From: Polymyxa betae A26-41
Lineage: Eukaryota; Protista; Endomyxa: Phytomyxea
Reading direction: 5' to 3'
Assembly: GCA_003693705.1 (NCBI GenBank)
Contig: RBZT01000281.1
Span: 1 to 56,464 of the forward strand
DNA length: 56,464 bases
The notes under the pieces were generated by a model. The model did not search any database, had not been told where the DNA came from, and worked only from the letters and a program-made list of their open reading frames with translations. Made by a program: the position numbers and the translations under genes. Position 1 is the first letter of the stretch. Each line of letters opens with the position of its first letter. This document shows positions 9,667 through 56,464 of the stretch, piece after piece.

Positions 9667-11068
9667 CTGCGATATTATGGAAGATTTAGTCGTTTCAAGA
9701 TGAGCGATCTTCGAAGATGAGCACGTGACCAGTGCTTGGTACGAAGGTTATATCCAGAAATGAGGGCTTGAATCAGTGATCTCACATGACTTGAGGGATC
9801 TCAAACATCCTTAAACGGTCGTGCAGGCTATTGACTACTGTTAACAGCTGAATACAAACTTGAACAGCTGATGCCAAGTACCTTGTTGATGAAGATCATT
9901 TTAAAGAGCGAGTAATCTGAGTTTCAGAGAAGGGTTTAGGCAGAGGATTCGCTTTTCGGCGCCACATTGTCAGTAGAGAAGTTACGCCCGCTGTTTCGAA
10001 ACTCGCCTTTGTTAGCCTGCTGTACCGTTGTTGCCATTTCACGATTCGGCAATAAAGAGACGTGATCTCATCAAGAAATAAGTTTGAAGTTATTGCTCAC
10101 ATGGTCTCAGAGGCACCAATCACAGCGCGAGCTGGCCAATACGAGCGGTGGTTGGTTTAGTTGAATTTGTTGTCGGCCCTAGCAAAACCCAAATAACGCT
10201 TCCGTATTTCGGCAATTCTCAGTTACGCCAAGCCCTTGGTGCCTTGGAGTTGTTCTCTTGTAATTAAATACGTGACCATCATCGAGGGACAATAAAAACA
10301 GGTGCTTCAGAATTGGGATTGGTGTGACTAAGACTGGTTGGGCGATACAGTTCAGTCTGACATTATAAGTAGTCGGACAGATTGCCACGTAATGCCTCGC
10401 CTATCAAAAAGAACATTTTCGGAGCAGGTTTCGAGAGAATCTGGATTTTGGAATCCAATTCCAGCGGTTGATTGACAAATTGAGAATCAGATAGGACAAG
10501 CTTCGCCGAGGTCTGTTGGAGGTACAACAACAGGTGGCATGACAAACAGCAATAAAACTGTCAAGGACATCAATAACGTCAAAGAATAAAGGCTTGCAAC
10601 GGTCCAGTCAACTTCTGAATGCCAACAGGCGAGCGGTTGCTGGAGCCATTGTCAACAGTTCCCGGAACCGTCGATGACCGTCAGCAGTAGTCCGACCCGC
10701 TGTGTTTATGCGGCGAAACGCCAAAGTAAAGAAACCCTAATCCAATCCCTATCTAGTTCAAAATCACAATCCCGACATCTACCGGTACCAGTTTCATTGA
10801 TTGGCCATTCCTCCGCATTCCCGTTTCCAAAAGAAATAGAAACACTTCACATCACCGCTTTATTCAAGCATCGATATAAAGAATATATATTAAAGAAATC
10901 TTGATGCAGCCGAATAACAGATAGCAATCACAGAACGCGGGCACTTCGTATAGTTGATTCATGGGCAACTGCGACGAAATTGTCTTGAATCTGTTATGGA
11001 TAATATGGGTGAACACCAATTTAACTGGAACTGATGCCAAAAATTAAGAGCGCTTTAAAATAAGAAAG

Positions 11069-11718
11069 TCAGATAGAACCTTCTCGGCAGCAGGGATAAA
11101 TGGCCACATTCCCGTTGTTGAAAAAAATGACGGCAATGTTGGCCTTTTGCTGGAGGTTTAAATCTCGGTGTGTCCCAGCACAGACAGCAGCCGTATCATC
11201 TGATGCAAAGCATAAGACTATATGAGCACAGTAAACAGTGAGCTTCATCTTAATACTGGTTGGGATATCAACAAATTCAGCAGGGTAGCCAGCTTCTCCC
11301 GCTACTTGCACCCGATCGAATCCGAGATTCAGCGTCCCTAAAGCTTCTCCAGCATCGTCTACGTGAATTGAGATTATCTGGAGATTAGGTCTCGTGTAAA
11401 CCAGCACGTTGCGTCGTTGCCGGGCCAGATTAGTTACGACCAGATCATAGTCCATGTTGGTCACGAGCGCTGATGTACATGAAGGGTTATTAAATCTGGG
11501 ACCATTTGGCCCCTTGGAAATGACGTCATGAGAATACGTCGACGGCGTGCCTTGTACACGCTACGTTCAGTACTGATACTGACTTGACTATCGCTGACAG
11601 AAACTGGTAAGCAAAGTAATCCATTAGCAAAGATAACGCAGATAACAATGAGTTCTTCGCAATCGGACCAAACTGCTGCGAGTTCAGAGTCGAGCTGGGA
11701 TTTGACGTGCTTTCTCAT
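11069..11718 (-). pseudogene. Frameshifted paralog (copy A) of the 12622-13240 orphan gene
   Basis: The same peptide is split across ORFs 11461-11718 and 11069-11464. Indels relative to copy B include ctaatggatt vs ctaatgggatt. Confidence 0.55.
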
Positions 11719-12621
11719 CTCTTTTTCAGCTCTGCTGCGATTCTCTCATTTTCCTCCCCGCATCCGCGCCAGTGCACGATAAAACCCCTATCCAAACCCA
11801 AAAATCTGATTCAAATCACAATCCCAAAACATCTTCCTTAATAACAGCATCATTTATCTAGTGCCTATTCTGTCATTTGTAATTCTAATTCATCTGTTTA
11901 ATTTGGCATACTTGAACGTAGCCGTTCTCATTAACGTATGGGTTAAAGCCAGATCTATCGCCTCTGAGACTTGTCACATGATGAAGAATTGTTGGTTATC
12001 TGTTCCATTCCAGGATTCCACAATGACACTAAAAATAACGAGATTGGCTTCGTATTGGACCTTCGAAGGAGCAAGTCAACTTTACATTGCCAATTTTATT
12101 GCAGTTTGAATTCGCTATAGTCCATAATGCATTCGATATGAAGCAATCGCTTCGTGCCTGATTACTGCATTTCAGGAGATTTATTTGTTACTAGAAGCGT
12201 AAAAATCGCTTACCTGGCTTCAGAAGTTAATCAGCTCGAATACCGACAGTAACACTTTTGAATGCACATTCTTCTATGTGTGCTTTCTCATGGCTATCTT
12301 TTTTCAAAATGATGCAAATTTTGAAGTCTTTCCAGAGTGCAAAATTCCTTTAATTCGTCATACCTCCACATTCCCGTTTCCAAAGAAAATAAACACTTCA
12401 CATCACCATTTTATTCAAGCATCGATATATATCATTCATAGCAAGGAGATCTTGATACAACCAAACAACAATTGGAAATTACAAAACGTGGGCACTTCAG
12501 ATAGTTGATTCATGGGCAACTGCGACGAACATGTCTTGAATCTGTTATGGATAATACGGGTGAACACCAATTTAACTGGAACTGATGCCAAAAAATTAAT
12601 AGCGCTTAAAAATAAGGAAAG

Positions 12622-13240
12622 TCAGATAGAACCTTCTCGGCAGCAGGGATAAATGGCCACATTCCCGCTGTTGAAAAAAATGACGGCAATGTTGGCCTTT
12701 TGCTGGAGGCCCAAATCTCGGTGTGTCCCAACACAGACAGCAGCCGTATCATCTGAAGCAAACCATAAGACTACAGGAACAGTGAGGAGCACTGAAACAT
12801 TGAGTTTCATCTTAATACTGGTTGGGATATCAACAAATTCAGCAGGATAGCCAGCTTCTCGAGCTACTTGCACCCGATCGAATCCGACATTCAGCGTCCC
12901 TAAAGCTTCTCCAGCATCGTCTACGTGAATTGAGATTATCTGGAGATTAGGTCTCGTGCCAACCACCACGGTGCGTCGTTGCTGGGCCAGATTAGTTACG
13001 ACCAGATCATAGTCCATGTTGGTCACGAGCGCTGATGTACATGAAGGGTTATTAAATCTGGGACCATTTGGTCTCTTGGAAATGACGTCATGCGAGTACG
13101 TTGACGGCGTAATCTTGCACACGCTACGAACAGTACTGACATGACCATCGCTGACAGAGACTGGTAAGCAAAGTAATCCCATTAGCAAAGATAATGCAGA
13201 TAACAATGAATTCTTCGCAATCGGACCAAACTGCTGCGAA
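12622..13240 (-). CDS. Orphan protein with a hydrophobic, signal-like N-terminus (copy B)
   Basis: 194-aa ORF LLSALSLLMGLLCLPVSVSDG...AIYPCCREGSI; possible small intron near 12750-12800; start codon uncertain. Confidence 0.45.
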
Positions 13241-13599
13241 TTCAGAGTCGAGCTGGGATTCGATTATTGTGCTTTCTAATCTCTCTCTTTCTCATCGCTG
13301 CTGCGATTCTCTCATTTTCCTCCACCGCATCCGCGCCAGTGCACATTAAAACCCTAACTCAAACGCCCTTCTGGCCGTCCCCGGTGAAATCGAATCGTCA
13401 CCCTGAACACGGTCACAACGTCAGTTGAACAGCATCATGTTACAAACTTGCAGGGTTCGATAGATGTAATCGACGGCGTCGCATCCAATAGGTCCACTGC
13501 AAGAAACACCTGTGGTTGATAATGTTCATCGCTCTCTATATAATTCGAATCCAAACCATGATCCTGCGCAAATCAACTGAGCTGAATGAAGTAAGAGAT

Positions 13600-42452: not shown

Positions 42453-44225
42453 TCAAACTGCATCGGCGATTCGCACATGTGCCAGCTCAGTAGGCTTTGG
42501 TTGGACGATAACCGCATTGGCATCCGCCGCTGCAGCTCGAGGTCCTCCCCAGGAACGTACTCTGAACGTAAACATGCCGTATATTTGGAAGATCGCCGAG
42601 AAGATGGGCAGGAACAGCAAGATCAGGGGATAGCCAAAGACGACTTTATACCGATTGATGTGAACCGCCCAGCTGCTGACAAACAACCAGATCGGGATGA
42701 ATATCATGACCGCGAATCCGATCGTCTGCCAAGTGCCATGGCCTAAAGCCGCCTCCATGAAGAACACGTAGACAAACAGCGGACCGTTCTTCAAGGCCGA
42801 TAATCCAATCAGGACGTTCAAACCGGGGAACTGCATCCAGAGAACCGGTGACGTCAACATGTAAATTTCGTTCGTGACTGTCCCGAGATACCATCGGCGG
42901 CGCTGCTTCATCAGCGACCGAAAGCTATCACAGCCTTCGGTCTTGCAACGGGCGGCCGGGCAGAACCCGATTCGGTATTTTCCTGCGCGCTTCTCCATGA
43001 GCAGATGCGTTAGATAACGATCCTCGCCCAGATGCGTTCGGTTGAAATCGAAATCGTCTTCGGCGGTCATCTCCCCGAAGTAAACATCAGCGACGGATTC
43101 CAGCGCTTCGAATCGGACCATCGTTAGAGCGCCGGGTAAGCACGACACCGACCCGAGATAGTCCTCCGTGTTTCGCTGCAGCATCTGCGACTCGATATAT
43201 TCGCTGTCTTGGATGAGTTTGTAGAAACTGTACGTGCCGGCAGTCTTGCAGGTGATCAGGCCGGTCAGCGCCTCACGACTGATGCCTTTATGCCGGTTCA
43301 TGTCGTAGACGAAATGGGCCATGGCGGTCGGTTCCAGTTCGATATCACTATCGATGAAGAGCAGCAGCGGCTTCACAGCCAACTGCCTGTAATGCTTCTG
43401 CAGATACTGGAAGGCGCACATCTGCGCGTGACGCTTGCCGCCGTGCTCGAATCGGCATGGCGTTATAATCAGGTTGCGATATTTGATATCGCCGATGAGC
43501 GGGTAATCTTTCGGGTCGTTCGAGATGCCAAGCTCGGCCTGGCCTTCGGCCGTCGATAACAGCTTGTAATCCGGGTTCGGATTGCCGCTCGTTAGACAGT
43601 AGATGACCGCTTTGTAGACCAAGGTGAGCTTGTCGTCGTCGAACGCCATCAACAGATGCAAGCGCTTCTTCGGATATTTCGCTTGAACGACCGAGTTGAC
43701 GGCGACCATCAGCGTTTCGATGGGCTCGTTATAGATGGGCATGACGACGGTGATGGCTGGTAGACCGTCCTTCTTTCCACTCACTTCAGCTCGAAGCAGA
43801 CCCGAAACATCGCGATTGTTGGGCGACCGACGCCAGGCGTCCGAGGCGCAGCCGATCTTGAACCAGGTCGTGGCGATCAGCAGGATCGGCTCGAAATACA
43901 GGAATCGGACCCATTCGCGATCGAAAATCGAGCCGACCCAGGGCCGTTGCAGAAGCAGGATCCCGCTCCAGTTGATGATGGTGATGAGGATGTAATAGAC
44001 GAAGCCGTTATAGCCAATATAAGCAACAAGATAGAGAAGGGCCGTCAGTCGAGTTCGGAACGGGAAATCGTTGGACTTTTCGCCGTCCCGAATCACTTTC
44101 GCTAACGTAACGACATAGACGGTGAAGTAGGAGATGGCGTGACCCAGGGCGATTACCAGGAAGAACGACACGACGCCGTTCGTGATCAGGGCGGAATTCG
44201 ACCCCAGCCACTGGACGACATCCAT
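42453..44225 (-). CDS. Chitin synthase (GT2), resembling fungal class VI / division 3 (ChsD-like)
   Basis: HGGKRHAQ, LFIDSD, QDSEY, SCLPGALT, HLGEDRYLT and QRRRW, with flanking TM helices. 590 aa, intronless. Confidence 0.9.
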   Translation of the reverse strand: MDVVQWLGSNSALITNGVVSFFLVIALGHAISYFTVYVVTLAKVIRDGEKSNDFPFRTRLTALLYLVAYIGYNGFVYYILITIINWSGILLLQRPWVGSIFDREWVRFLYFEPILLIATTWFKIGCASDAWRRSPNNRDVSGLLRAEVSGKKDGLPAITVVMPIYNEPIETLMVAVNSVVQAKYPKKRLHLLMAFDDDKLTLVYKAVIYCLTSGNPNPDYKLLSTAEGQAELGISNDPKDYPLIGDIKYRNLIITPCRFEHGGKRHAQMCAFQYLQKHYRQLAVKPLLLFIDSDIELEPTAMAHFVYDMNRHKGISREALTGLITCKTAGTYSFYKLIQDSEYIESQMLQRNTEDYLGSVSCLPGALTMVRFEALESVADVYFGEMTAEDDFDFNRTHLGEDRYLTHLLMEKRAGKYRIGFCPAARCKTEGCDSFRSLMKQRRRWYLGTVTNEIYMLTSPVLWMQFPGLNVLIGLSALKNGPLFVYVFFMEAALGHGTWQTIGFAVMIFIPIWLFVSSWAVHINRYKVVFGYPLILLFLPIFSAIFQIYGMFTFRVRSWGGPRAAAADANAVIVQPKPTELAHVRIADAV

Positions 44226-52616: not shown

Positions 52617-53625
52617 TTTTATATAAAAAATTATACACGTCTTTGATACGATGCAGCGGGCTCTTATGATACGGGAATAGTCTGAAACATTTGACCTCAC
52701 CAATATGCACCGTGGGCAGGTTCTGGCGGACCATCGTCTCCAGGCATTGCTGCGTGCCGGCGTTCGACGGCATACAGCCCAGCTCGACCATGATGGCGAT
52801 CGGGATCGCCGGCGCCATTCGCGTGATCAACTGCAGGCGCAGGAGGATGAAGTTCAGCAGGCGCGCCCGATCCGACAGCGAATGGACGGCGATGATGGCG
52901 GCGAGGGCGTCGCGGCGCCCGTCCCCAAACAAGGCGTGCGTCCCCGTGCGGATATCGGCGTGATACTGCCAGGGCGTCTCGTGGATGCGGACGATGCGGA
53001 CGCGGCGTATGCTGGCTCGGCATGAGAGCAAGACCCAGCAATAGCTGATGGCTGACCAGGAGAGACGGAAGCGTCGCCGAATCGTCGAGCGCCGATCGAG
53101 GTATTCGTGGTCGAGAATCTCGACGCACCCGGGGCCGTATTCGAAAGCCCACGACGGCCATTGACGAACGACGGCCCCGGGATGGTACAGGTTCTGCAGG
53201 TCGTCTCCAGGGTCGTTCAGCTCGAACACGATCAGATCGACCTGGTGCATGGAATCCGAGATGATCACCTGTGGGGAATAAACCCTAAACCCTAGTCCAG
53301 AGCAGCAATCGACCGGCCAGCACTTACCATTGGCCAGATCAGGACGGCGGCGGCGGAATCTCGGTCGTCGTCGTTCGAGACGGGATGGTGACTGGGCTGG
53401 GCGTACCGGCCCAGCAGCTGCCGAACGACCGCGGACGCAGCCACGCCCGCCCAGTCGGCCCACAGGCAGCGCCCGCACCACGACGTTCATCTGTTTTGTG
53501 TGCGACGAGACTTTATTCATGCCGACGAAGACTGAAACGGAACCTGGTCGTACCGGCCCGCCCCGCCCCGGCCATCGGTTGATAGAGATTTCATCATCAA
53601 CGTCGAGGATGGTGCGCCTTCCCAC
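52606..53625 (-). CDS. GC-rich hypothetical protein (spliced; intron ~53269-53327)
   Basis: Long ORF with a coding-like segment LIVFELNDPG...NLPTVHIGE and a GTAAGT...CAG intron. No family recognised. Confidence 0.4.
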   Translation of the reverse strand: MGRRTILDVDDEISINRWPGRGGPVRPGSVSVFVGMNKVSSHTKQMNVVVRALPVGRLGGRGCVRGRSAAAGPVRPAQSPSRLERRRPRFRRRRPDLANGKCWPVDCCSGLGFRVYSPQVIISDSMHQVDLIVFELNDPGDDLQNLYHPGAVVRQWPSWAFEYGPGCVEILDHEYLDRRSTIRRRFRLSWSAISYCWVLLSCRASIRRVRIVRIHETPWQYHADIRTGTHALFGDGRRDALAAIIAVHSLSDRARLLNFILLRLQLITRMAPAIPIAIMVELGCMPSNAGTQQCLETMVRQNLPTVHIGEVKCFRLFPYHKSPLHRIKDVYNFLYKNLK

Positions 53626-54668: not shown

Positions 54669-54742
54669 AGCCCGTGCCGGGACTCGAACCCGGAGCCTTG
54701 AGATTAAAAGTCCCACGCTCTAACCAATTGAGCTACACGGGC
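54669..54742 (-). tRNA. trnK-UUU: tRNA-Lys (anticodon UUU)
   Basis: GCCCGTG TA GCTC AATTGGTTA GAGC G TGGGA CT TTT AA TCTCA AGGCT CCGGG TTCGAGT CCCGG CACGGGC T folds as a cloverleaf. Confidence 0.97.
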
Positions 54743-54752
54743 GTCTGCTGAC

Positions 54753-54904
54753 TGTTAGCAGATGAGCGCTGTTAGATCAATCTCGAGATATCGATAGCGT
54801 TGACTCACGCTAATTCAACCGGAAGCATTGCCTTCCGCTTGCATACTAAGAAATAAAACACTTCTTCAAACACATTCCAGTTCAAAACCCTCTCCCGTCT
54901 AACA
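54753..54904 (+). mobile_element. Solo LTR (152 bp) with 5-bp TSD CTGAC
   Basis: Termini TGTTAG...CTAACA form a perfect 6-bp IR; internal AATAAA; flanked by CTGAC at 54748-54752 and 54905-54909; 151/152 identical to 56252-56403. Confidence 0.9.
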
Positions 54905-55244
54905 CTGACGATGTCAATTGACGAGCGACAAACGTGTTTACAGGAAACAGATTCGAGGCGGCGAACAACATTGTCACATTGCTCTGTTGCGTTATGGATT
55001 GTAAAATCTAAAATCCTTGACGAAACCGAAACTGAAAACCCTTAAAGTCCAGATATTTGCGCCGATCGCAGATTTGGTAGCAACGTCCACGTCCCTGTCG
55101 TACAGCATCACACAAAATCGGATGAGCAGTGCTCATCACGCGCGCAGCGCTTTAGTATCCAGCTGCCCTTACCTAAGGGGATATCACGCAACCGGGTACA
55201 CCGACATCGATGATGGGAATTATTCAAATTGATCAGACGGCGAT

Positions 55245-56081
55245 ATGGGAGCCTATGCCCCGATCATCATCATCTTCGTCACGTATCAATCGCTGCTGCT
55301 GACGATCTTCGCCTTGTTCGTCTATCGGAAATATGACCCGAAGGCCCGTCTCTGGAACCTCATCAACATGATCATGATCGTCTCGGGCCCGATCGGCATC
55401 TCTTGGTACGCCATGCACCTGGAACCAGCAACACCTGAGACCTGCGCTGTCATCATGATGTTCGGTGCCTCGCTCTACCACGTCGCCTACTTCATGATGA
55501 TGGTAGCGTCCGCGCTGCGCATGTTCGCCCTGAATGACCTGCAGGGGGTCAAGAACAAACGGATTGACGGGGCCATCCTCGGCGCCATCTTACTGGACCA
55601 GATCGTCACCATCATCCTGCACAACACGACGCTGACCCCGATCGTGGATACGAACACCGACCAGTGCGCCATCGTCGTAACCAAACTGTTCGCCTGGGTG
55701 GCGTTCGGCATCCCGGTCGTACTTGACCTCGCCATCGTCGCTCGCCTTTACAAGTACCTCGGGGGGGTCTCGGCTCACCATATCGAACGTCTGCTGCGAG
55801 TCATGATGGGGTTTCTGAGCCTTCACGTCGTTGTTGGAGTCACGTACGTGTGCATCGTGATGTTTGGGCTGGTCCCGTTGACGCCCAGCGTCCGCATCAT
55901 ACTGGTCAGCGTACAACTGATCTCCGGCTACACGTCCATGACGTTGCCGCATATCGTCGTGCAGATGTGGCGAAGTTGCGGCTGGTTGCAGAGCAGTAAG
56001 ATGACGGGGAAGAGGACCAACACGGCCGGGTCGAAACCGCTCGCCACCAACACGAAAACGACTGCCGAAGGAAGAGTTTGA
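55245..56081 (+). CDS. Seven-transmembrane GPCR-like protein, intronless, 278 aa
   Basis: Seven hydrophobic segments, with Cys at the start of TM3 (ETC) and in ECL2 (DQC). Confidence 0.75.
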   Translation: MGAYAPIIIIFVTYQSLLLTIFALFVYRKYDPKARLWNLINMIMIVSGPIGISWYAMHLEPATPETCAVIMMFGASLYHVAYFMMMVASALRMFALNDLQGVKNKRIDGAILGAILLDQIVTIILHNTTLTPIVDTNTDQCAIVVTKLFAWVAFGIPVVLDLAIVARLYKYLGGVSAHHIERLLRVMMGFLSLHVVVGVTYVCIVMFGLVPLTPSVRIILVSVQLISGYTSMTLPHIVVQMWRSCGWLQSSKMTGKRTNTAGSKPLATNTKTTAEGRV

Positions 56082-56166
56082 GCTTGACACCACTCGTGTC
56101 GCTTGTAAATAAACTAGCAAATCCGTCAAATTGATAAAAATTGAGCAGCACCAACCCACGGTTGAT

Positions 56167-56240
56167 AGCCCGTGCCGGGACTCGAACCCGGAGCCTTGAG
56201 ATTAAAAGTCCCACGCTCTAACCAATTGAGCTACACGGGC
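56167..56240 (-). tRNA. trnK-UUU: tRNA-Lys (anticodon UUU), identical second copy
   Basis: Same 74-nt sequence as 54669-54742. Confidence 0.97.
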
Positions 56241-56251
56241 TGCTCGATATC

Positions 56252-56464
56252 TGTTAGCAGATGAGCGCTGTTAGATCAATCTCGAGATATCGATAGCGTT
56301 GACTCACGCTAATTCAACCGGAAGCATTGCCTTCCGCTTGCGTACTAAGAAATAAAACACTTCTTCAAACACATTCCAGTTCAAAACCCTCTCCCGTCTA
56401 ACAGATTAAGAGTCCCACTTGCCTCTATTTATAGCTGCGTGGAGTTTCGCTGCACAGACTAGCG
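56252..56464 (+). mobile_element. 5' LTR (56252-56403), half-tRNA-Lys primer-binding site (56404-56418) and start of the internal region of a copia-like retrotransposon, truncated by the window end
   Basis: Same TG...CA LTR, but flanks do not match (ATATC vs GATTA). The next 15 nt, GATTAAGAGTCCCAC, are the reverse complement of tRNA-Lys nt 26-40. Confidence 0.85.

Follow-up and report, generated by a model that had tools for sequence, protein, structure and literature searches.

A miniature LTR retrotransposon placed just upstream of tRNA genes in Polymyxa betae, with probable copia-type integration at RNA polymerase III start sites

Why should two tRNA genes on the same contig each carry the same short repeat at almost the same distance from their 5' ends? 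This question is raised by one end of the 56,464-nucleotide stretch of Polymyxa betae A26-41 DNA analyzed here (the window, which is the entire contig G000:C666 of a 27.1 Mb assembly comprising 1001 contigs). Two tRNA-Lys(UUU) genes, identical at 74 of 74 positions, are each accompanied there by a 152-bp block that begins with TGTTAG and ends with CTAACA. Both tRNA genes are read from the minus strand, which puts each block upstream of a tRNA 5' end, at 10 bp for copy 1 and 11 bp for copy 2, and the two spacers are unrelated to one another. The distances, the differing spacers and the differing tRNA 3' flanks had been noted in an initial annotation made from the sequence alone, and all are borne out by ARAGORN, Rfam and the sequence itself. 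No third block exists in the window, where none would be expected by chance. We conclude, with high confidence, that the blocks belong to a non-autonomous long terminal repeat (LTR) retrotransposon resembling TRIMs (terminal-repeat retrotransposons in miniature), which would be primed by half a tRNA and integrated in trans by a probable copia integrase tethered to the RNA polymerase III (Pol III) machinery.

Two such tRNA-block units could have arisen by segmental or tandem duplication. The identical tRNA genes and the blocks themselves, which agree at 151 of 152 positions and lie about 1.5 kb apart in the same order, would be in keeping with this origin, as would the presence of the same tRNA-Lys with the same 10-bp spacer as copy 1 in contig C655. 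The structure of the two units, however, tells otherwise. Copy 1, whose own target-site duplication (TSD), CTGAC, had already been recognized in the initial annotation, is a solo LTR. In copy 2 the block is the 5' LTR of a complete element: its internal region runs off the contig end and resumes in G000:C10:1-414 (overlap of ~31 bp), where it ends in a polypurine tract (PPT) and a 3' LTR (G000:C10:415-566, 151/152 identical to the 5' LTR), followed by an ATATC that matches the left side. The two blocks are thus not the two LTRs of one element, and the 151/152 figure that had been used to date the insertion compared LTRs of two different insertions. Besides the differences in TSDs, spacers, tRNA 3' flanks and element structure, the LTR is also present at over 20 further tRNA genes, which belong to other isotypes.

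Evidence from a second isolate bears on the same point. Four sequencing runs contain the window locus. X1, probably the source of the assembly, has the occupied allele, while X2 has the same species label and comes from another study. A 1325-nt contig of X2 joins position 54747 to 54905 and skips exactly 157 bp, that is, the LTR plus one TSD; 5 nt are shared at the joint, a single CTGAC is left, and the depth of 16 equals the full local depth. A single-CTGAC empty site in another isolate, which had been named as a check, therefore exists. It concerns copy 1 only. Because of this empty site and the different TSDs, duplication is already refuted and has practically no chance of explaining the two units, whose origin as independent insertions, proposed from the outset, is upheld. 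Since the second isolate holds the exact empty site of copy 1, the 152-bp LTR family has also moved recently. The claim of a recent insertion thus stands on other grounds than those first given, and 5' and 3' LTR pairs of single elements are 150–152/152 identical; seven copies are mutually identical, an identity that collapse at contig ends could inflate. The locus in C655 (L022, G000:C655:1-240) is a separate observation: its tRNA-Lys(UUU), 10-bp spacer and CTGAC duplication are those of copy 1, but its LTR belongs to another subfamily and its distal flank is unrelated. Either this is a paralogous locus in which the same 5 bp were struck, or it is an artefact of assembly at the contig end.

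The anatomy of the element emerged from aligning the LTR flanks genome-wide, which fell into three recurrent contexts. In the first, the LTR is followed by a conserved sequence starting with GATTAAGAGTCCCAC, identifying 5' LTRs; in the second, a conserved sequence ending in the purine run ..GCGAAGGGGCG abuts the LTR, identifying 3' LTRs and their PPT; and in the third, the LTR has neither conserved sequence and is bordered on both sides by a perfect 5-bp direct repeat, identifying solo LTRs. The element is accordingly laid out as LTR, primer-binding site (PBS), ~445–460 bp of non-coding internal sequence, PPT and LTR, ~760 bp in total. One complete copy is found at C959:61344-62106 (including a gap of 20 Ns), and the same internal region is contiguous in C784, C737 and C10. 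Matching 5-bp TSDs occur at no fewer than 15 solo LTRs or paired ends. The internal region's one listed open reading frame (ORF), of 107 aa, had no match in Pfam, and tblastn with copia polyproteins found no similarity to the element. Given an internal region of this length that lacks both Pfam matches and copia similarity, the element is a non-autonomous, TRIM-like LTR retrotransposon without coding capacity; it combines direct TG..CA LTRs, a PBS, a PPT, TSDs of fixed length, a size below 1 kb, the absence of gag and pol, and presence/absence polymorphism. In runs X3 and X6, the depth over the internal region is far above that of neighboring genes, which hints at abundant element transcripts, with the caveat that depth sums over repeats are unreliable.

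The position seen at the two window loci recurs across the genome. We took 41 LTR-bearing stretches for tRNA calling and paired 5' and 3' LTRs by their TSDs, which reduced at least 44 LTR copies to ~31 distinct insertion sites. At 23 or more of these ~31 sites, the 5' end of a tRNA gene faces the LTR at 8–13 bp, mostly 10–12 with a mode of 11 (using a common 5'-end definition). The raw BLAST-to-ARAGORN distances were 8, 10 (six times), 11 (ten times) and 12 (twice), plus four outliers: 20 and 32 reflect partial BLAST alignments, and 74 and 168 belong to LTRs that are outermost in a tandem. No LTR copy lies within 240 bp of any tRNA 3' end. If up to 1372 tRNA-like targets are granted, the binomial tail for 23 of 31 insertions falling in a 6-bp window is ~1e-74. 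In this fragmented assembly, the tRNAs listed represent a lower bound. The occupied tRNAs represent 18 anticodon types and 14 amino-acid classes, and include Lys-UUU, Thr-UGU, Gly-UCC, Gly-GCC, Leu-CAA, Leu-UAG, Ala-AGC, Glu-CUC, His-GUG, Asn-GUU, Ser-AGA, Phe-GAA, Arg-UCG, Arg-ACG, Gln-CUG and Ile-AAU. Either LTR end faces the tRNA, about equally often, and the 5-bp TSDs show no consensus between sites. In this light, the proposal of Pol III-directed integration holds, as does the narrow position, but the fixed 10–11 bp needs widening to 8–13 bp, and the shared orientation, correct for the window, is no rule elsewhere. One site was even used twice: at a tRNA-Ala gene in C390, two tandem solo LTRs (L011:1414-1815, equal to G000:C390:19450-19850) surround one CCATT target, and their identities of 96.7% and 91.4% to the query indicate different ages.

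We also approached the question from the side of the tRNA genes, using as a control the 700 bp upstream of 62 tRNA genes that had been selected by Rfam score alone. About 17 of the 62 (27%) have an LTR end, ..TAACA or ..TGACA, at -10 to -13. Nine of these ~17 carry the 152-bp family. The remaining cases include at least three other confirmed LTR families, namely the "..CTTACTTAACA" family (three tRNAs), a family found in C406 and an element in C730, together with three single cases (L128, L097 and L104) that show the right end motif at the right distance and are unconfirmed as LTRs. Upstream of unoccupied paralogues of the same tRNAs, the sequence is unrelated.

A bias of this kind might also be left behind by selection, if integration were random or loosely biased and purifying selection removed all other insertions from a gene-dense genome. 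The compactness of this genome fits such a scenario, and tRNA upstream regions are classic "safe havens" (PMC5911963, PMC5006619). Selection cannot, however, produce a window of +/-2 bp, the re-use of the same 5-bp site, or young identical copies that already sit at -11, nor do insertions accumulate downstream of tRNAs or in other intergenic DNA. We consider this explanation very improbable and retain directed integration.

Not every LTR copy adjoins a called tRNA gene. Four to five copies without one adjoin short tRNA-like cassettes, in which inspection by eye found a box-B-like GGTTCGA and an oligo-T terminator at the expected spacing. Lying at about the usual spacing from the LTRs, these are probably additional Pol III targets, and their use fits recognition of a Pol III transcription unit and not of the tRNA sequence. 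At 16 loci without an adjacent ARAGORN tRNA (including distal ends and one contig-start copy), Rfam found no LTR-adjacent tRNA except a truncated tRNA-Lys in C655, and no 5S, U6 or 7SL gene; relaxed ARAGORN called nothing in the flanks of 13 tRNA-less LTR ends. As to 5S genes, we noticed that those at C68:154-274, C179:104-224 and C150:125-245 (all G000) lie 100–150 bp from contig starts, as if an upstream repeat had broken the assembly. Another observation concerns the LTRs at L052:3430-3560 (G000:C737) and L016:1654-1783 (G000:C482, low-coordinate side), which lie beside paralogous, degenerate TTTAGGG-like repeats; these flanks are possibly subtelomeric.

How the site is recognized may be approached from the same data. 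That the distance is fixed, that targets have no consensus and that neither tRNA identity nor orientation matters argues for targeting by position, mediated by a protein bound where Pol III genes start; the use of tRNA-like cassettes points the same way. Instead, the integrase might read a DNA feature of tRNA genes directly, such as box A or DNA shape, with no tether to a Pol III factor. In all confirmed targets the insertion point does keep a fixed distance from internal promoters of the tRNA type, which is compatible with this idea, and the tether is itself putative. On the other hand, neither TSDs nor spacers have a consensus, the targets include cassettes with a box B and a T-run in which the cloverleaf is missing, and all studied precedents (Ty3, Ty1 and TRE5-A) use protein tethers (PMC5911963). 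Direct DNA recognition is therefore quite unlikely in our view, and a protein tether remains the preferred reading.

The PBS provides a first indication of the element's affinities. All 15 of its nucleotides are the reverse complement of a stretch of spliced tRNA-Lys(CUU) whose end lies in the anticodon arm, at about position 40. We found two genes for tRNA-Lys(CUU) (L122, G000:C654:2707-2793; L123, G000:C649:41878-41970). They have anticodon-loop introns of 14 and 20 nt, and the PBS match crosses the splice junction, so that it fits the spliced form only and the primer would come from a spliced tRNA; with tRNA-Lys(UUU) there is one mismatch. If up to 2 mismatches are allowed, the genome contains 73 occurrences of the PBS core, compared with 0 of a reversed-pattern control. 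Many of these fall in contigs with matches to RVT_2, a domain with more than 150 matches in all. Some copia elements, among them copia and Ty5, are known to use an internal fragment of a tRNA as primer.

Autonomous copia elements with the same signals are indeed present. The element in C730 encodes Retrotran_gag_2 (the copia gag), Pol_BBD, rve, an SH3-like domain and RVT_2, with the integrase before the reverse transcriptase (RT); its LTRs are of the TGTTAG..TAACA type and are followed by the same PBS core, and the start of its 5' LTR is found 11 bp upstream of a tRNA-Thr(CGU) gene. At this same distance upstream of a tRNA-Arg(UCG) gene lies the start of the C406 family, which also has the PBS core. 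An unrelated metagenome contig (ENA ERZ25039503 contig_14055, L136:9212-13531) contains a full-length copia 10–11 bp upstream of tRNA-Gly(GCC), with 206-bp LTRs that are 100% identical, a GTGAT TSD, the same PPT, GAAGGGGCG, as the miniature element, and a tRNA-Lys PBS with one mismatch; the same targeting thus occurs outside this assembly. In the other metagenome relatives (L135 and L137–L139) the PBS type is shared and no tRNA is visible on the assessable sides. Several copia families hence occupy the same target position, and the miniature element shares their cis-signals but not their LTR body, leader or coding sequence. For this reason its copia affinity is supported only indirectly, by association: the shared half-tRNA-Lys(CUU) PBS, the TGTTAG..TAACA termini, the 5-bp TSD and the -11 position, together with the PPT common to it and L136. 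The copia lineage assigned at first is to this extent retained, while the element itself is non-coding and has no similarity to copia proteins. Among candidate partners, the PBS-sharing copia elements in C730, C607, C687, C20 and C240 were rejected, as their LTRs are unrelated to the 152-bp LTR; so were related degenerate copies in C349 and C391, which have neither long ORFs nor LTR pairs nearby.

The targeting could be genuine and the copia label nonetheless wrong for the integrase, if the mobilizer were non-copia or chimeric, either gypsy-type or a copia/gypsy hybrid. A non-coding element for which no autonomous relative with similar LTRs was found leaves room for such a source. Yet the PBS type, the LTR termini and the target position are common to elements that encode copia gag, rve and RVT_2 with the integrase before RT, and the PPT is shared with the copia element on L136. 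A non-copia mobilizer is accordingly unlikely, while still deserving some weight, and we favor a copia integrase acting in trans.

Putting these lines together, the primer of reverse transcription would most likely be a piece of spliced tRNA-Lys(CUU) with its end in the anticodon arm ("half-tRNA" priming). The resulting cDNA would be integrated in trans, most likely by the integrase of an autonomous copia with which the element has its PBS, LTR termini, 5-bp staggered cut and target position in common. This integrase may be tethered to the Pol III initiation complex on tRNA-type genes, through TFIIIB/TFIIIC or Pol III itself. A 5-bp stagger with an 11-bp spacer would place the target at about -11 to -7, counted from the 5' end of the mature tRNA. 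Yeast Pol III starts ~10 bp upstream of that end (PMC5911963), and the -11 insertion point would thus coincide with the start of transcription. The system as a whole is most likely a case of convergent, Ty3-like Pol III start-site targeting in the copia lineage. In its fullest form, the proposal is that base-precise integration at Pol III start sites, resembling that of Ty3, arose independently in a plasmodiophorid Ty1/copia clade and its non-coding miniature parasite, using a copia integrase with a new tether and priming by half a spliced tRNA-Lys(CUU); we lean toward this version with some reserve.

Several observations weigh against this interpretation. No recognizable Pol III gene accompanies a solo LTR in C643 (L023), a copy in C432 (L006) that is nested against another LTR, and several distal or unpaired ends. 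Many copies are at contig ends, where repeats may be collapsed, and identities and copy counts are approximate. The empty site was seen in one assembled contig of one run, which shows the presence of the empty allele and not its frequency. The putative coincidence of -11 with the start site is drawn from yeast tRNA leaders of roughly 10 nt. The element lacks coding sequence from which its own lineage could be read, and when its LTR, its 92-nt leader and its entire internal region were used to search the genome, only short elements were returned and no autonomous element having a similar LTR or leader.

The features of the two window loci and the tRNA-like cassettes are collected in Table 1. 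Target gene 1 is intact and identical in sequence to unoccupied paralogues.

Table 1. Positions of tRNA genes, LTRs and associated features at the two window loci, and of tRNA-like cassettes elsewhere in the assembly (window coordinates unless a locus is named)
Feature	Position	Strand	Remark
tRNA-Lys(UUU) gene 1, target gene	54669..54742	-	ARAGORN, Rfam
Spacer, 10 bp, tRNA gene 1 5' end to LTR	54743..54752	.	Last 5 bp (54748-54752, CTGAC) = left TSD
Solo LTR (copy 1), 152 bp, TGTTAG..CTAACA	54753..54904	+	
Right CTGAC TSD of copy 1	54905..54909	.	
tRNA-Lys(UUU) gene 2, target gene	56167..56240 (Rfam); 56166-56241 (ARAGORN)	-	
Spacer, 11 bp, tRNA gene 2 5' end to LTR	56241..56251	.	Last 5 bp (56247-56251, ATATC) = left TSD
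5' LTR of complete TRIM-like element (copy 2)	56252..56403	+	
PBS GATTAAGAGTCCCAC of copy 2	56404..56418	+	15-nt perfect complement, anticodon arm of spliced tRNA-Lys(CUU)
First 61 bp of ~445-bp non-coding internal region of copy 2	56404..56464	+	Runs to contig end
tRNA-like cassette	L016:1654-1760 (G000:C482)		Probable Pol III target
tRNA-like cassette	L017:1400-1500 (G000:C285)		Probable Pol III target
tRNA-like cassette	L004:2264-2360 (G000:C959)		Probable Pol III target; 3' LTR
tRNA-like cassette	L024:243-330 (G000:C612)		Probable Pol III target

Other features of the window were noted in passing. Between the two tRNA-LTR units, a 278-aa ORF (55245-56081, plus strand) has many hydrophobic stretches and belongs to no Pfam family; a 1119-nt contig of run X3 covers it. 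Contigs of runs X3 and X6 skip 59 bp at 53267-53325, with CT..AC ends (GT..AG on the minus strand), which looks like a spliced intron; these runs are probably RNA, and the gene at this place is probably on the minus strand. At 42453-44225 (minus strand) lies a 590-aa chitin-synthase-like GT2 glycosyltransferase, whose nearest protein-atlas clusters are from giant viruses (Nucleocytoviricota), and at 10792-13364 there is a tandem duplication of ~1.55 kb with copies that are 79–95% identical over their parts.

Targeting of tRNA genes is a textbook example of how retroelements survive in compact genomes, and its examples have so far come from yeasts and dictyostelid amoebae. With a copia-associated 8–13 bp window in a rhizarian, such targeting would have originated independently a third time. 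If the copia-clade reading is true, copia would here be seen for the first time to target Pol III start sites precisely, and Rhizaria would have their first known Pol III-targeting system; it would mean that copia-type integration machinery can be aimed with base-level precision and would make a new natural integrase-Pol III tether available for dissection. Made up only of LTR ends, PBS and PPT, the ~760-bp non-coding element serves as a compact natural substrate that reports the activity of this machinery, and its presence/absence polymorphism provides ready-made strain markers at tRNA loci in a host group, the plasmodiophorids, that includes parasites of crop roots. The host's HSP90 points to this group: its identity to the Plasmodiophora brassicae protein is 88%, metagenome sequences reach 85–95%, and all remaining hits are at 80% or less. 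A diatom was considered as host and rejected, since LHC and silicon-transporter genes are absent.

Pol III start-site targeting as such is a known behavior; what appears to be new is the association with copia, the TRIM carrier, the half-tRNA-Lys(CUU) primer and the host supergroup. So far, start-site precision has been described only for Ty3/gypsy-type elements and some non-LTR (L1-type) elements, and every LTR element listed with such precision in the table of a 2018 review is Ty3/gypsy, with fungi and dictyostelids as hosts (PMC5911963). The literature that we searched, which included the P. brassicae genome papers and did not extend to subscription-only papers, contained no report of copia at a fixed distance from tRNA genes, nor of such an arrangement in plasmodiophorids.

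The closest parallel in position is provided by Ty3 and its Ty3/gypsy relatives (Ty3p, Tj1 and Tyl3/Ylt1/Tyl6), which are likewise LTR elements and insert no more than a few bp from where Pol III starts on tRNA genes. Ty3 inserts in either orientation, with a 5-bp TSD and independently of tRNA identity, and leaves many solo LTRs beside tRNA genes. Unlike the present element, the Ty3 group consists of fungal Metaviridae with the gypsy domain order, whereas the element described here is non-coding, lives in a rhizarian host and has shared features that point to Ty1/copia. Ty3 is targeted via TFIIIB/TFIIIC, and TRE5-A via TFIIIB (PMC5911963). The integrase contacts with TFIIIB/TFIIIC are a feature of Ty3, while for the Polymyxa element we only infer a tether.

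In lineage, the better comparison is with Ty1, Ty2 and Ty4 of Saccharomyces, which belong to the copia lineage, target Pol III genes and produce a 5-bp TSD. The window of Ty1 is broad and nucleosome-phased, extending over several hundred bp, and its primer is the 3' end of initiator tRNA-Met, not an anticodon-arm fragment of tRNA-Lys. Ty1 and Ty4 thus differ from the Polymyxa element in their broad windows, as opposed to 8–13 bp here. For Ty4 the window is ~1 kb upstream of Pol III genes, according to the review table (PMC5911963), and for Ty1 targeting works through binding of the integrase to Pol III subunits, specifically AC40 (PMC5911963; PMC7459421).

Among protists, DGLT-A (Ty3/gypsy) and the TRE5 and NLTR elements of dictyostelids resemble our case in their independently evolved targeting upstream of tRNA genes in a compact genome. 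They differ in belonging to gypsy or non-LTR lineages, and the Polymyxa window is narrower than that of DGLT-A. DGLT-A inserts 13–33 bp and NLTR-A 2–6 bp upstream of the mature coding sequence (PMC5911963; PMC5006619), and dictyostelids have no copia elements (PMC5006619).

With respect to its structure, the element is comparable to the TRIMs of plants and animals, including Cassandra, which are shorter than 1 kb, have short LTRs, a PBS and a PPT and no ORFs, and are mobilized in trans. We know of no TRIM reported to target Pol III start sites; Cassandra contains a 5S-like gene inside its LTRs and is not known to insert beside Pol III genes. Finally, as regards priming, half-tRNA-primed copia elements (Drosophila copia, Ty5, Osser and Tp1) similarly have a PBS complementary to an internal tRNA segment whose end is in the anticodon arm. 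These elements use initiator tRNA-Met, in contrast to the spliced tRNA-Lys(CUU) that would prime the Polymyxa element.

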